A stretch of 64,000 nucleotides of DNA. It comes from Macrostomum lignano (Eukaryota). Below are positions 14,682 to 49,183 of the stretch, piece by piece (within the stretch, counting starts at the first letter, position 1; every line of letters starts with the position of its first letter). Under the pieces are notes generated by a model. It searched no databases and had not been told where the DNA came from. It saw only the letters and a program-made list of their open reading frames with translations. The DNA lies in NCBI GenBank assembly GCA_002269645.1, contig NIVC01000905.1, positions 248,001-312,000 on the forward strand, read 5' to 3'. A program made the position numbers and the translations under genes.

Positions 14682-15114
14682 TTATCGTCTTCCCGACATG
14701 TAGTAGTGCCTGCAGCAACAGTAAGGGTGGTCCTTTTTTTGGGAACTAAAATTTTAACCAAATTTTGAGTAAAAACAATAGAAATATGTATGGAAAAATA
14801 TACAGAGCTGCTAGCATTTGCCCATGGCATCCTCACCAGCTGAACTTCTTGCACACATTGCAGTTGGAGACAATGTAGCATCCAGCATTGCTGCTGAAGT
14901 GCTTGCAACACTTGCAAGACAGTCTTCCGTTGCCTCCATTATTGTGCCAGAATGCGGCAAAGTCCTTCACCTTACTGAAAGTTAGCAGGATATCTCTGGC
15001 GCTTTTTAGTGACTAATTCAAATTAAAATAATTTCAGATGTCAGCTGGATTGACTTACGTGCAATTTTCGCAATCCCAAAAAAACAACGATTTACCGCTG
15101 CAGCAGTCCACCAT
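14682..15114 (-). CDS. CCH-1: 85-aa Cys/His-rich microprotein, 3 exons
   Basis: Exons 15114-15059, 14974-14837, 14745-14682; GT-AG phase-2 introns of 84 and 91 nt; MVDCCSGKSLFFWDCENCTKVKDFAAFWHNNGGNGRLSCKCCKHFSSNAGCYIVSNCNVCKKFSCSQKKDHPYCCCRHYYMSGRR*. Confidence 0.8.
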
Positions 15115-15550
15115 TCTTAAGCTTTTTAGCTGGTAACAAAAAGTAATTCCTTGAGGCAGTTTCTAGCATTGAAGGAAACTAAAAATGCATCCAATTCATA
15201 TACGAGCTACACCCGTTTACACGGTACTGCATTGTAAGTTTAAGCGGTTGTTCCCAGTAGCTGTGATTCAACTGATTCGTGGCTACAGAGATAAAACTGA
15301 CAAACAATTCACTGCTGATAATGAATGCCGTTTTGTTATTAAACATTCTGCAAGTTTTTCAGCTGCAAAACTCAAATAGTTTCATTTTTCATCTTCTAAC
15401 AAGGACCAGTTCAGCGATTTTAACTTCAACTCAACCACAGATTTTTCTGCTCCAAGAGTCTAAAGATGTTGTTATAGCAAAAGATGAGATGACATGGCTC
15501 AAGGGGGAGTTGCTGAGATGCCATGGCTCAAGGGGGATTAGCATTTTAGT

Positions 15551-15840
15551 GTCTGTCTGTCTGTCTGTCTGTCTGTCTGTCTGTCTGCCTGTCTGTCTGT
15601 CTGTCTGTCTGTCTGTCTGTCTGTCTGTCTGTCTGTCTGTCTGTCTGTCTGTCTGTCTGTCTGTCTGTCTGTCTGTCTGTCTGTCTGTCTGTCTGTCTGT
15701 CTGTCTGTCTGTCTGTCTGTCTGTCTGTCTGTCTGTCTGTCTGTCTGTCTGTCTGTCTGTCTGTCTGTCTGTCTGTCTGTCTGTCTGTCTGTCTGTTTGT
15801 CTGTCTGTCTGTCTGTCTGTCTGTCTGCCTGTCTGTCTGC
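15551..15840. repeat. (CTGT)n microsatellite
   Basis: Direct observation. Confidence 0.97.
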
Positions 15841-16565
15841 CTATTTGTCAATAGTGTGTCTTAGTTCTCTGAGTGGGTGACTGCATGAATGAGTAACTGA
15901 GTGTTTCTCAAAAGTCATTGTCACTATGAACGGTGCCACATCAGCATGTATAGACGACTTCCCAAATCTATTTTGAATTTTAGTTGAATTTTGTTGCTAA
16001 ATTAAAATAAAGCGTCACGCCTAAAAGAGGCCAACCCATAGGCGATGGTTTTGTCACTTATTAAAATAGAACAGGAATCTACCGTGTTTGTGTCCGAAAA
16101 GACACCTAAAGAGTAGATTGAATGTTTTGTACTAACGTTTTTCAGAGTTTTCGTTTTCATAACGATTTATTGACAAGCTAGAACGCGGAAAAAAATATTC
16201 AAAAAGATATGAATGTGAAATCGCATGCATTCCGAATAATTGTATATTTGTTTTAATACACTTCCTTGCATCAATATGACAATCGATTATTTGTTGAATT
16301 GGTAAAAACATTATCCAAAATGTGAATTCTTTCAGCAACCGAAAGTGAATTATGAATTCTTCAAAAATGACTCGTATTGTTGTCGCGGTTACGAAGATTC
16401 ACCTTTTGAAAATAATGACGTCTTATGTTTTGGTACTCAAGATTTTTAGTTAGCAGTGAAATGGTTATTGATAATCACAATACGGAAAGTATTGTGAAAT
16501 AACACTATAAAAAAACGTATTATTGTGGTTCTGTAGTCAAACAATCCATGTCGATCTGTACCTGT

Positions 16566-17032
16566 CTAATCATTGACCCGATATTTACTTGGAAAGAAAT
16601 GGTAGCAGCAGCAGTTGGGGTACTCGTTGCGTTGATTGCCGCTGTGGAAGTACTTGCTGAAAAGGCAAATGTACAATTTTTTCGTGTTGCTAAGAGGCTA
16701 TATAATATCTGAAACAAAAAATGAGCTAACTTCAAAATATCTTTTTGTGCGCACCTGCGGTTGTTGTTGCAAACACTGCAATTTCTTTTGCAGCAACCGT
16801 CATCAGCCAGAATATCCTGCTCGTGATGAAGATAGCAGCACTGTGTCCTCATACCTCTGCTCAGTGCTTTGCTTTGCCATTCAATGTATTTCCTCATCAG
16901 GCTGAAATGTTTTTTTTCAAAATGAAGGACACCGAATTCAGATAAACTGGAGCAACACAGAAATGATTCAGACGCTACTTACACGCAGCGGACGCATCTT
17001 TGGTGTCCAACGCAACGACAACAGCTTGACAT
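16566..17032 (-). CDS. CCH-2: 95-aa Cys/His-rich microprotein, 3 exons
   Basis: Exons 17032-16983, 16901-16755, 16656-16566; phase-2 introns of 81 and 98 nt; MSSCCRCVGHQRCVRCVLMRKYIEWQSKALSRGMRTQCCYLHHEQDILADDGCCKRNCSVCNNNRSKYFHSGNQRNEYPNCCCYHFFPSKYRVND*. Confidence 0.87.
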
Positions 17033-17247
17033 TTCTATTAGGAGTTAAATCACTCAACAGATTGCAGTTGGAACAAGGTAGCTAAATCAATTTCTTTTAA
17101 ATTCATGCAGCCACTGATCGACAAGACGGCACTGCTTTTTATATTCATGAGATTATTAGGCAGTACCTCCTTATTTCAGTTGCAATTCATGATCCAGTTT
17201 AGTCAGTACTATATTCAGCAACAGGCAAAAACATCTGACACACCGTG

Positions 17248-46325: not shown

Positions 46326-46488
46326 TACTTGTATTGTTATTATTATGATACAAAAATATTTCAAACTGCTTTTGCTCACTGTTGATATTAAAAATGTAGA
46401 TTTTAGAGTACCGTGTAGAGTTTAGGCACAGTTTACGATAATGAACTTTTTAGTACTGTTTAAATCAGTCGGCTTTACATTGGCCTAG

Positions 46489-46777
46489 TTAAATAAACTT
46501 AATTAGGCAGGCAATTCCAGCCACCACAGCTCCACCGACTATCACTGGCGTGGCAGCAACAGCCACTGCACCAGCGGCAGCACAAGCGGCAGCTCCACCG
46601 CCACCAGCAGCAACAATGCTTGTTGCTACACTCTTAGCGCGACAACCTCTAAAAGAAACAAAATGTAGAGAGGAAAATTGCGTAAAAATTGCAACTGCTT
46701 ACGTAGTCAAGCGTGTTTAATAGTACATAAAGACACACCTGCCGCTTGGATGAGCGCAGCATCCGCCTGACGGACTC
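46489..46777 (-). CDS. CCH-15: exons 2-3 of a CCH-14 paralog with Gly/Ala-rich hydrophobic tail (exon 1 not found)
   Basis: Exons 46777-46739 (SPSGGCCAHPSG) and 46648-46489 (GCRAKSVATSIVAAGGGGAAACAAAGAVAVAATPVIVGGAVVAGIACLIKFI*), both phase 2. Confidence 0.6.
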
Positions 46778-47000
46778 CTAAAACAGCGGAAAATTTCAAA
46801 TTAATGGATTAAGAAAATTAAGCGACTCTTTTTATTGGGATCTTTTTTTAATTATCAATCGTTTTTTCATATATTTTGCCCTACTCCGTCTCGAAACTCA
46901 AGTGCAAGTGCTTTTTAATCGCATCATTTTTGACGGGCCATCATGATTTATGAGCTAACTTACAAGCTTCTGACTCTACTCTTAAATGACTCTTACTCTT

Positions 47001-47109
47001 AGATGACAATAGATGACCATAGATGACCATAGATGACCATAGATGACCATAGATGACCATAGATGACCATAGATGACCATAGATGACCATAGATGACCAT
47101 AGATGACCA
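47001..47109. repeat. 10-bp tandem repeat (AGATGACCAT)n
   Basis: Direct observation. Confidence 0.95.
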
Positions 47110-48884
47110 TATATAACCAGATAGACACTCACAAGGCTACTGGACAGGGAATCTTTCATCCAGCTCTCCATCAGCTCTTCCCCTAACGCATCAGCTCGAT
47201 CTTATCATCAGCATCAACATCAGGATCGAAGTTAAAATTCAGTCATACTTAGATGATCTGATTGATGGCTGGCTTGATGGGCATGAGTCTATGAGCCCAT
47301 AGACTAAAGTTTTTGTCGATTTTCAAGCTTGAATTTTCTAACTATGATCAGTTAAAAGCTCATAGGATTAACATGAGCAGAAAATGCTACATAAACTACC
47401 TGTGAGGATACTGACTATCACTGACTATCTGGTAGTTGTGGGAGTCCAGAGCTCTCAAAAATTGATTTCTGAGCTCTCAGGCACGTTAGTCGAAGGCTGA
47501 GAGGCTACGTAGAGGCTCGTAGTTAGATCAACCAGAAGTATCAAAATAATGGCAGCATTATCAATTTACTTCACTTACATTTGAAAGCAGTTCCAACAAA
47601 AAGGTTTATGACAACACTGATTCATGGTGGTTGACTCTGCATGAATTTCAATAGAATACAGGACAATGCAGTGTTGAAAAAGGCCTTAGATCTACTCGTA
47701 AATAGTTGATAGCTCCCTTAATGCATATTCATGACAGGTAGTACCTCATCAATCTTATAGACGAGCTCAGTAAGCGAAGGGCTATGCTTGAGTTCGAATT
47801 TGGTTACTCTTCAGCGGAGTAGATGTACGAAGTACATCAAAACTGCTTTCCATCAACGAGATAATTGCATGCATGACGCCAGTGACTCAAATAAACAGAA
47901 TTTGTTTGCTAAAGTTTGTTAATAAGATACATTAGCTGCATAAAACATAATTTAGGACTTGCATGGTAGCTAAAAATATTTGACGAAAAGAATGATTTGA
48001 GAATAGAAAACTCAGTGAAAAAAACAAGGTACAACACACAAGAAAAAGAGACCAAAATCCAAGAGAGGGCGAGAGAACTGAAGTAGAATCTTGTACAAGC
48101 TAAGTCGAATTTAGGAATTCAGCGAAAGCCATCTTAAATTGAGTTGGATTGAATTGAGTAATACATTCAGATTGATAATTTTGAATAAGTAGTTCACTAA
48201 AGATGTTGCAATTGAGAACAGTAATAGGTGTTGTTCTGTAGAAGTCTGTGGGACGTCTTTGATGATCAACAGCATGAGGATACCAGCAAACATGTTATTG
48301 ACCTTTTTGACTTCCTGGCAACCCGCCAAGCGGCAGTTCCTATTACAGTCCCTATATGCAGACACGGCCTTATTAATAGACTTTGCAACAACCCACCGTG
48401 AAGGCGTAAAAATGTTTTACAGAGCTGGAATAATTCGTATGACATTTACGCGCGAAGATCTGCAAATGCACTTTTATTGTTTTTTCCGGGAATGTACGCT
48501 TCCTGGTGAATTGGACGTGTACGCCAAAGTCTTGAAATTGAAATTCTCTGCTACGAGCGTATAAAGGGGCAATCCTGAATAATCATCAGGTGGTATAAAA
48601 AAAACTCCAGTTTTTGTAAATTTGGCGAAAAATCGAACGGCAACCGACAAATCTCAGACTCGGACTGATTTTTATCTATAAAGTTGAGTTTAAGCTTAGT
48701 TTATTAATAATGTAATTTAGTCCAAACCCCTTGCATGCTTGTATTTAAAACCTTGCGCGTTGTGTAGCCAGGAAAAGTCGATGAATAACTGAATAAACAT
48801 GTCTAAAAAATGTTTTGTGATGAAATCACCGATCAACTCAATTGGGATCCATTTAGCATAGTTATGACTCTCGTGCAGCACCCT

Positions 48885-49183
48885 CTAGTGACCAGCGTGC
48901 TTGTGACAGCAAAATCCGACAAAACCTTTAGCCTCGGCTTGAGCTTTCGCTGCTCTAAAAAAGCATTATCAAAGTTTAAACAAAGTTAAAACCGTATTGA
49001 ATAATGAGCCAAGAATAATAAAGACAGGTATGGAAAAATTGGAAATCAAAATCAGGTTAAATCAGATAGTAAAACAGACAAACAAAGTCTTAAATGCACA
49101 GTTCACATTTGGCTGGATCTTTACAACACTTGTCTTTGTCCTCCTCCTGACTCTTAGTCTTAATTGCTACCACCGTTGTCCAT
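48885..49183 (-). pseudogene. CCH-16: pseudogene paralog of CCH-13
   Basis: Last exon 48954-48885 intact (AAKAQAEAKGFVGFCCHKHAGH*); exon 1 MDNGGSN* is out of frame with DKCCKDPAKCELC and the donor reads TTAAGA instead of GTAAGA. Confidence 0.65.

Follow-up and report, generated by a model that had tools for sequence, protein, structure and literature searches.

A tandem cluster of cysteine- and histidine-rich microprotein genes in Macrostomum lignano and a possible metal-thiolate unit in their products

What is encoded by the very short Cys/His-rich reading frames that crowd the minus strand between positions 14682 and 49183 of a 64-kb stretch of Macrostomum lignano DNA, and what could their products do? 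The stretch, called the window here and the reference for all positions unless another contig is named, comes from contig NIVC01000905.1 (assembly GCA_002269645.1) of this free-living flatworm, a transgenic model. Its character is eukaryotic, with short GT-AG introns, fragments of long interspersed nuclear elements (LINE), long terminal repeat (LTR) and Harbinger elements, and many micro- and minisatellites. A preliminary description, made from the letters alone, had proposed a hidden cluster of about 16 genes. By hand splicing of the minus strand, using six-frame translation together with motif and donor scans, we rebuilt loci g15 to g49 and found 16 family loci, but only 11 of them are intact in the window copy, the other five (g24, g25, g39, g41 and g49) being remnants or pseudogenes. 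The cluster runs from the stop codon of g15 (14682) to the ancestral ATG of g49 (49183). Our confidence is high that this is a real family of coding genes restricted to one lineage. The full reading that we favour, a lineage-restricted tandem family of cytosolic Cys/His microproteins with metal-thiolate units, has in our estimate a probability of about 0.5.

Strand bias, gene models and transcripts

The cluster stands out as a strand-specific signal. CCCxH occurs 11 times in the minus-strand frames and once in the plus-strand frames, whereas 200 shuffled versions of the region average 0.035 occurrences, and a composite scan (an ATG and C.?C-x(2-12)-CxxC, followed no more than a few codons later by a phase-2 GT donor) returned 11 minus-strand sites between 15114 and 47625 and none on the plus strand. 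This 11:0 bias argues against a reading in which the open reading frames (ORFs) are chance products of repeat or transposon DNA, or in which the transcripts are non-coding. That reading draws on the abundance of satellites and transposon fragments in the region, on the position of two subfamilies (B and C, below) within dispersed repeats and on the five broken loci. The CCCxH motifs of these two subfamilies were also considered as reverse-strand transposon artefacts, an idea that was dropped because they have their own ATG exon, phase-2 donor and intron of 77–92 nt.

The 11 intact genes have two or three exons and encode products of 28–103 amino acids (aa). All introns of the 11 complete models are GT-AG and phase 2; 12 of them measure 77, 77, 78, 81, 81, 82, 84, 86, 90, 91, 92 and 98 nt, and five longer ones (256–1045 nt) have repeats inside. 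Length differences among members are all in frame and the intron phase is constant throughout. The models thus bear out the earlier claim of ATG starts, conserved exon boundaries, frame-preserving indels and introns mostly of 77–98 nt.

The intact genes, all on the minus strand, fall into five subfamilies. Subfamily A comprises four three-exon genes encoding 85–103 aa: g15 (14682..15114; exons 15114-15059, 14974-14837 and 14745-14682; 85 aa), g17 (16566..17032; exons 17032-16983, 16901-16755 and 16656-16566; 95 aa), g19 (18452..19249; exons 19249-19197, 19114-18956 and 18551-18452; 103 aa) and g21 (20766..21241; exons 21241-21174, 21087-20935 and 20853-20766; 102 aa). The pattern Y(I/V)xW..CCxxHH..DGxCC..CxVC..PxCCCxH recurs, as had been described, in three neighbours of this group, g17, g19 and g21 (16.6-17.0k, 18.5-19.2k and 20.8-21.2k), each with two phase-2 introns of 81–98 nt except for intron 2 of g19, which reaches 404 nt because it contains a copy of a SINE-like (short interspersed element-like) repeat. 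Subfamily B consists of two-exon genes encoding only 28 aa: g29 (29316..29479; exons 29479-29433 and 29355-29316; MLTPCCPWGILCGNCRAAWREGRCCCRH) and g38 (37978..38141; exons 38141-38095 and 38017-37978; MASNCCPLGIFCPFCWIAWSQGRCCCRH). Subfamily C also has two exons and encodes 50–53 aa with a hydrophobic C-terminus; its members are g31 (30727..31924; exons 31924-31884 and 30838-30727; 50 aa), the intron of which is 1045 nt long and filled with (AGTC)n, and g36 (35831..36084; exons 36084-36038 and 35945-35831; 53 aa), with a putative tail anchor. Subfamily D, three exons and the motif GCCxHPSG, contains g45 (45005..45608; exons 45608-45550, 45293-45240 and 45161-45005; 89 aa) and g47 (46489..47625; exons 47625-47579, 46777-46739 and 46648-46489; 81 aa), which has a Gly/Ala-rich hydrophobic C-terminus. 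Subfamily E is the single gene g42 (42332..42975; exons 42975-42890 and 42422-42332; 58 aa), with two exons, the motif CCHKHA and (CTGT)n in its intron.

These genes probably have a promoter element in common. The motif GGTACT[AG]C (GGTACTGC) has seven minus-sense copies in the window, six of which stand 104–175 nt upstream of family ATGs (starts at 17167 (17160..17167), 19368, 21356, 43079, 47745 and 49358, minus strand), and the close variants AGTACTACCTTGT and GCTACTACCTTGT are found upstream of g36 and g31.

The GenBank annotation of the assembly was built from RNA-seq only, using StringTie/TACO, the TBONE pipeline and a de novo transcriptome (PMC5730564). Three of our hand-spliced proteins are identical, residue for residue, to entries of this annotation: g17 to PAA75082.1 (Mlig028464.g2), g21 to PAA75084.1 (Mlig005498.g2) and g45 to PAA75085.1 (Mlig018718.g1). 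Because these models equal transcript-derived entries, their splice junctions are transcribed. The entry at g19, PAA75083.1 (Mlig019325.g2, 71 aa; 18409-19028, minus strand), is an out-of-frame ORF spanning the exon 2/3 junction, and therefore that junction is transcribed too; the real ORF of g19, Cys-rich and 103 aa long, is longer yet absent from the annotation. A corresponding 63-aa version of PAA75083.1 is present on a duplicate contig, NIVC01002882.1, whose two loci (L001 and L004) are about 95–99% identical to the window contig. The entry at g15, Mlig031956.g1 (partial), has the same exon 1/2 junction as our model and an alternative acceptor, within exon 3, by which the CCC motif is left out. 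The AG of this acceptor (within 14682-14745, minus strand) arises from the Cys codons of the CCC motif itself (TGCTGCAG/G), and the CCC-skipping isoform may reflect true alternative splicing. Complete versions of g15 and g24 are annotated on the duplicate contig as Mlig002597.g1 and Mlig004807.g1, both matching our reconstructions exactly.

Spliced transcripts, which had been named as the first check on the cluster, are thus supported at at least five loci (g15, g17, g19, g21 and g45) through the RNA-seq-derived annotation. The same entries qualify the word "hidden": five loci carry GenBank "hypothetical protein" entries (three correct, one in the wrong frame and one a partial alternative isoform), while g29, g31, g36, g38, g42 and g47, with products of 28–81 aa, have no GenBank annotation. 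A full-text search found no literature mention of the gene IDs, and they are absent from the supplements, whose text is possibly incomplete, of PMC5816591, PMC5730564, PMC5946080, PMC7336406 and PMC12896417.

Divergence between paralogues and duplicated contigs

The pattern of substitutions in these ORFs points to coding sequence. In an alignment of subfamily A (seven sequences, six distinct paralogues), 12 Cys and one His are the only columns that never vary, although synonymous sites between the paralogues are saturated and the nonsynonymous divergence (dN) is 0.4–0.6. Pooling five gene pairs between the window and the duplicate contig gave 16 synonymous and 24 nonsynonymous differences (Sd=16, Nd=24), with a ratio of nonsynonymous to synonymous proportions (pN/pS) of 0.35 and a binomial p=0.0015 against neutrality. 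Together with the conserved intron phase, the strand bias and the three models equal to transcript-derived coding sequences, these values leave the chance-ORF or non-coding reading largely refuted, and we give it a very small residual chance of being right.

Coding constraint is only part of the picture. Across the duplicated contigs, family exons diverge more than introns (37/1302 vs 22/1615 positions, Fisher p=0.005). The density of mismatches in exons is about twice that in introns, and synonymous sites also exceed introns. Between g29 and g38 the intron is 87% identical, exon 1 only 66%. A copy of g21 on a third contig, NIVC01000551.1, is identical to g21 up to residue 61; beyond that residue 11 of 33 non-ligand residues differ and none of the eight ligand residues does, and the ratio of nonsynonymous to synonymous rates (dN/dS) of this pair is 1.06. 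A possible source of the excess exon divergence is diversifying selection or gene conversion between paralogues. The picture suggested by these comparisons is of a fixed Cys/His scaffold around which everything else turns over, fast or by gene conversion. The preliminary term "rapidly diversifying" therefore fits the exon excess and the one pair with dN/dS near 1, but not the pooled pN/pS.

A fast turnover of the non-Cys positions, seen in the exon excess and in the g21 pair, would also suit reproduction-related structural proteins, such as Cys-cross-linked sperm components comparable to Drosophila Mst84D/Mst87F or to mammalian Cys-rich sperm proteins. The Mst84D/Mst87F genes are, like the flatworm genes, tandem, tiny, lineage-restricted and intracellular in their Cys-rich products. 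Germline-enriched genes of M. lignano are reported to be rich in flatworm-specific genes (PMC5816591). The Drosophila proteins are however built from Cys-Gly-Pro repeats and show no sequence similarity to the flatworm ones, our gene IDs are absent from the supplementary tables (possibly incomplete) of germline, ageing and ploidy studies, and a simple structural role is ill-suited to the tail-anchored members and to the conserved His. We regard a reproductive structural role as quite unlikely.

At least three contigs of M. lignano, a recent polyploid, carry the family, each with a different complement. On the duplicate contig the copy of g38 is identical, and the CC of the g42 module, which reads SC in the window, is intact. 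Locus L001 of that contig also holds a duplicate of g21 (6020-6108) in which a 1-nt difference in exon 3 length, probably in a poly-T run, shifts the frame; either the copy is a pseudogene or the assembly is in error. The third contig carries further divergent family members (1858-2020, 12186-13262, 15261-15640 and 17779-18733 of its locus L005), including a subfamily B variant ending in CCCRQ, with the His lost, and a g17-like copy apparently without the middle exon.

The protein module and its proposed chemistry

Does the family have relatives elsewhere? A Pfam-A hmmscan with g15, g17, g19, g21 and seven other members gave no family above noise, and two sub-threshold matches of g36, to DUF1392 and Fungal_trans_2, were dismissed as noise. 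A HMMER profile of g17, g19 and g21 scanned against 1.84 billion representative proteins matched two proteins of M. lignano together with a spurious one, P0007, which has 1206 aa and 17 matched stretches and was rejected as the translation of a tandem repeat. A word-index search with a seven-sequence profile listed only M. lignano proteins, six in number, which all bear the name "hypothetical", and the same search with g19 alone gave no candidates. The subfamily A profile found nothing in the PDB sequences at E<=10, and nothing relevant on metallothioneins or cysteine-rich proteins of Macrostomum turned up in a literature search. At the sensitivity of profile searches, subfamily A is thus a taxonomically restricted (orphan) family, and the family as a whole is, by these comparisons, without described counterpart and restricted to Macrostomum as far as databases show. 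The earlier suggestions of lineage specificity, for subfamily A, and of no match to a known family both stand. In sequence and composition the family does not qualify as metallothionein or as CYSTM either.

One database label points elsewhere. UniRef names the cluster of g21 (A0A1I8G096) a "DUF2769 domain-containing protein", which would place the flatworm genes in DUF2769 (PF10967), a prokaryotic, uncharacterised family that likewise consists of small Cys-rich proteins. There is no PF10967 match at E<=10 in Pfam-A, the precomputed Pfam field of g21 is empty and the profile scan recovered no prokaryotic protein, so that we consider membership of DUF2769 highly improbable.

All members are built from the same two halves. 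The N-half, CC-x(3-8)-C-x2-C, ends at the phase-2 donor one or two codons after CxxC; the C-half is mostly P-CC(C)-x-H; and a unit of both has about eight Cys/His. Subfamily B is nothing but the two halves, with seven Cys and one His in 28 residues. Subfamily A holds two units (N1-C1-N2-C2), and the exon in the middle consists of a C-half (..RTPCCHIHH..) followed by an N-half; the N-half of g19 (..DDGCCDPDRCQVC..) is similar to exon 1 of g42. We infer that subfamily A was born when the terminal exon of one unit was joined to the opening exon of the following one. By hydropathy all members lack a hydrophobic stretch at the N-terminus, and hence none has a signal peptide, as the preliminary description had stated. 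At the other end of the protein, g31, g36 and g47 have a C-terminal hydrophobic segment of about 19 residues or more, with Kyte-Doolittle means of 2.42, 2.28 and 2.24 over the last 19 residues; this hydropathy of 2.2–2.4, combined with N-termini that are not hydrophobic, fits what is expected of tail anchors.

We propose that each unit would fold around a small metal-thiolate centre, either a pair of tetrahedral Zn sites or a Cu(I) cluster, with about eight ligands. The proposal is made because a signal peptide is absent and there is no space for a hydrophobic core, the smallest member packing eight potential ligands into 28 residues, and it is in keeping with the invariance of CxxC and of the His after CC(C). 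The products would then be cytosolic metal-binding or metal-buffering domains, soluble or tethered to membranes. Judged on the sequences, binding of Zn or Cu by metal-thiolate chemistry is a tentative mechanism to which we give slightly less than an even chance. Metal stoichiometry, cellular location and biological role are only inferred here.

Metallothioneins are the obvious comparison. The CC/CCC-rich cadmium metallothioneins of Tetrahymena are an example of proteins that, like the flatworm family, are tiny, lack a signal peptide and are rich in CC, CCC and CxxC, and metallothioneins also resemble it in tandem clusters and in modular duplication of Cys units. By analogy, metal-thiolate chemistry is likely to be the mechanism common to both. 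There are also differences. Metallothioneins have about 30% Cys, few or no aromatics and little His, a composition that the flatworm members do not share: they have 12–29% Cys, conserved W/Y/F and a His after CC(C), some end in a putative tail anchor, and they have no Pfam metallothionein match. CYSTM proteins are likewise tiny, eukaryotic and Cys-rich without a signal peptide, and a putative anchor helix stands at the C-terminus of subfamily C and g47. The cysteines of CYSTM, however, sit in or beside the transmembrane module, whereas those of the flatworm proteins lie in an N-terminal soluble module and the tail carries at most two (g47); a transmembrane segment is missing from most members, and there was no CYSTM match in Pfam.

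The placement of the cysteine pairs suggests a different explanation, in which they are S-acylation (palmitoylation) sites and the proteins small lipid- or tail-anchored membrane adaptors. In most members CC stands at residues 3–6, in many cases with basic residues after it (MSSCCYCVNRRQRCRRCR is an example), and the CCC of subfamily C precedes the putative tail-anchor helix by about 10 residues and has RRR after it. These placements resemble GAP-43-type N-terminal and juxtamembrane acylation motifs, the dual-Cys motif of GAP-43 likewise having CC in the first six residues and then basic residues. GAP-43-type sites are a short motif, not a family, and S-acylation leaves unexplained the CxxC spacing, the His after CC(C) and the 12 invariant Cys across the soluble proteins of about 100 aa in subfamily A. 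We think it unlikely that S-acylation accounts for the module, but it is the main rival to metal binding and could be compatible with metal binding at the same time.

Several observations weigh against the metal-thiolate reading. The 400 nt upstream of each of the 11 genes contain no elements of the metal-response (MRE) type, nor their cores. An AlphaFold2 model from a six-sequence alignment was uninformative (predicted local distance difference test score, pLDDT, of 44). The Cys content and the conserved aromatics are unlike those of classical metallothioneins; CC or CCC near the N-terminus or beside a transmembrane helix is a typical S-acylation site; the dN/dS of one pair is near 1; and no expression pattern was found in the supplements, possibly incomplete, of the germline, ageing and ploidy studies. 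A bolder and more doubtful extension of the metal-thiolate reading is that the 28-aa unit may be a minimal metal-cluster fold, not described before and confined to macrostomids, which would have spread by tandem duplication, exon fusion and gain of tail anchors to yield soluble and membrane-tethered metal-handling microproteins.

Broken copies, repeats and the meaning of the locus

The five broken loci, all on the minus strand, were damaged in different ways. In the window g24 is reduced to exon 1 (23916..23953; MECCRRRNCNYCS), whereas the gene is intact on the duplicate contig and encodes the 85 aa of Mlig004807.g1. Positions 2416-3263 of L001 hold 847 bp that are missing from the window at 23722-23724, and because this extra DNA carries a 20-nt minisatellite together with exons 2 and 3 of g24, the window gene is truncated by a deletion at the minisatellite. 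The remnant g25 (24498..25197) retains a middle exon at about 25197-25078 and the last exon at 24567-24498 (..GYCCCKHYCFKTHSEACGIL*); exon 1 and the donor of exon 2 have been lost to satellite DNA, and L001 has a complete three-exon version. At g39 (39183..39312) the last exon of a subfamily C gene stands alone (..AGSCCCVHYW..), with (AGTC)n and a LINE fragment (Exo_endo_phos_2) upstream of it. The subfamily B pseudogene g41 (40990..41150; exon 1 remnant at about 41150-41106 and exon 2 at 41029-40990) has no ATG and has changed CC to CY. The subfamily E pseudogene g49 (48885..49183; last exon 48954-48885, ..CCHKHAGH*) has an ATG (49183) homologous to the start of g42, a frameshift between that ATG and the CC module, and TT in place of the GT donor at 49093-92.

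Repeats lie between and within these genes. The SINE-like dispersed repeat, about 230 bp long, has copies at 18650-18890 (in intron 2 of g19), 30190-30395, 32236-32473 and 46121-46301, and Rfam and tRNA scans of the window found nothing, in this repeat or elsewhere. Long (AGTC)n/(CTGT)n microsatellites occupy 30880-31850, 42440-42890, 15460-15950 and 3550-4240, two of them filling the introns of g31 and g42. Minisatellites of 20–22 nt lie between genes at 17.1-18.1k, 19.3-20.2k and 21.9-23.3k, and a GA-rich satellite at 24.6-26.9k. Within the cluster we found three transposon fragments, one with an RNase H domain (32672-33562, minus strand), one of PIF/Harbinger type with DDE_Tnp_4 (34338-34883, plus strand) and a LINE endonuclease (40146-40568, plus strand). 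An LTR-retrotransposon pol (RVT_1/rve), annotated as 1472 aa, lies at about 53200-55600 (plus strand), and the cluster is flanked by a fibrinogen-related gene, of which a fibrinogen C-terminal domain exon was found at 5672-6292 (plus strand; Pfam E=1e-32).

The locus is a concrete case in which transcript-based annotation misses microproteins of 28–81 aa and misframes another (PAA75083.1). It also displays the birth, fusion and breakage of a gene family, and conversion across the duplicated subgenomes of an organism that became polyploid recently. We know of no characterised metallothionein from the flatworm group. Should the unit prove to bind metal, it would represent a new minimal Cys/His scaffold and the first candidate metal-buffering system in that group, and since M. 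lignano is a tractable transgenic model, the family is open to direct testing.

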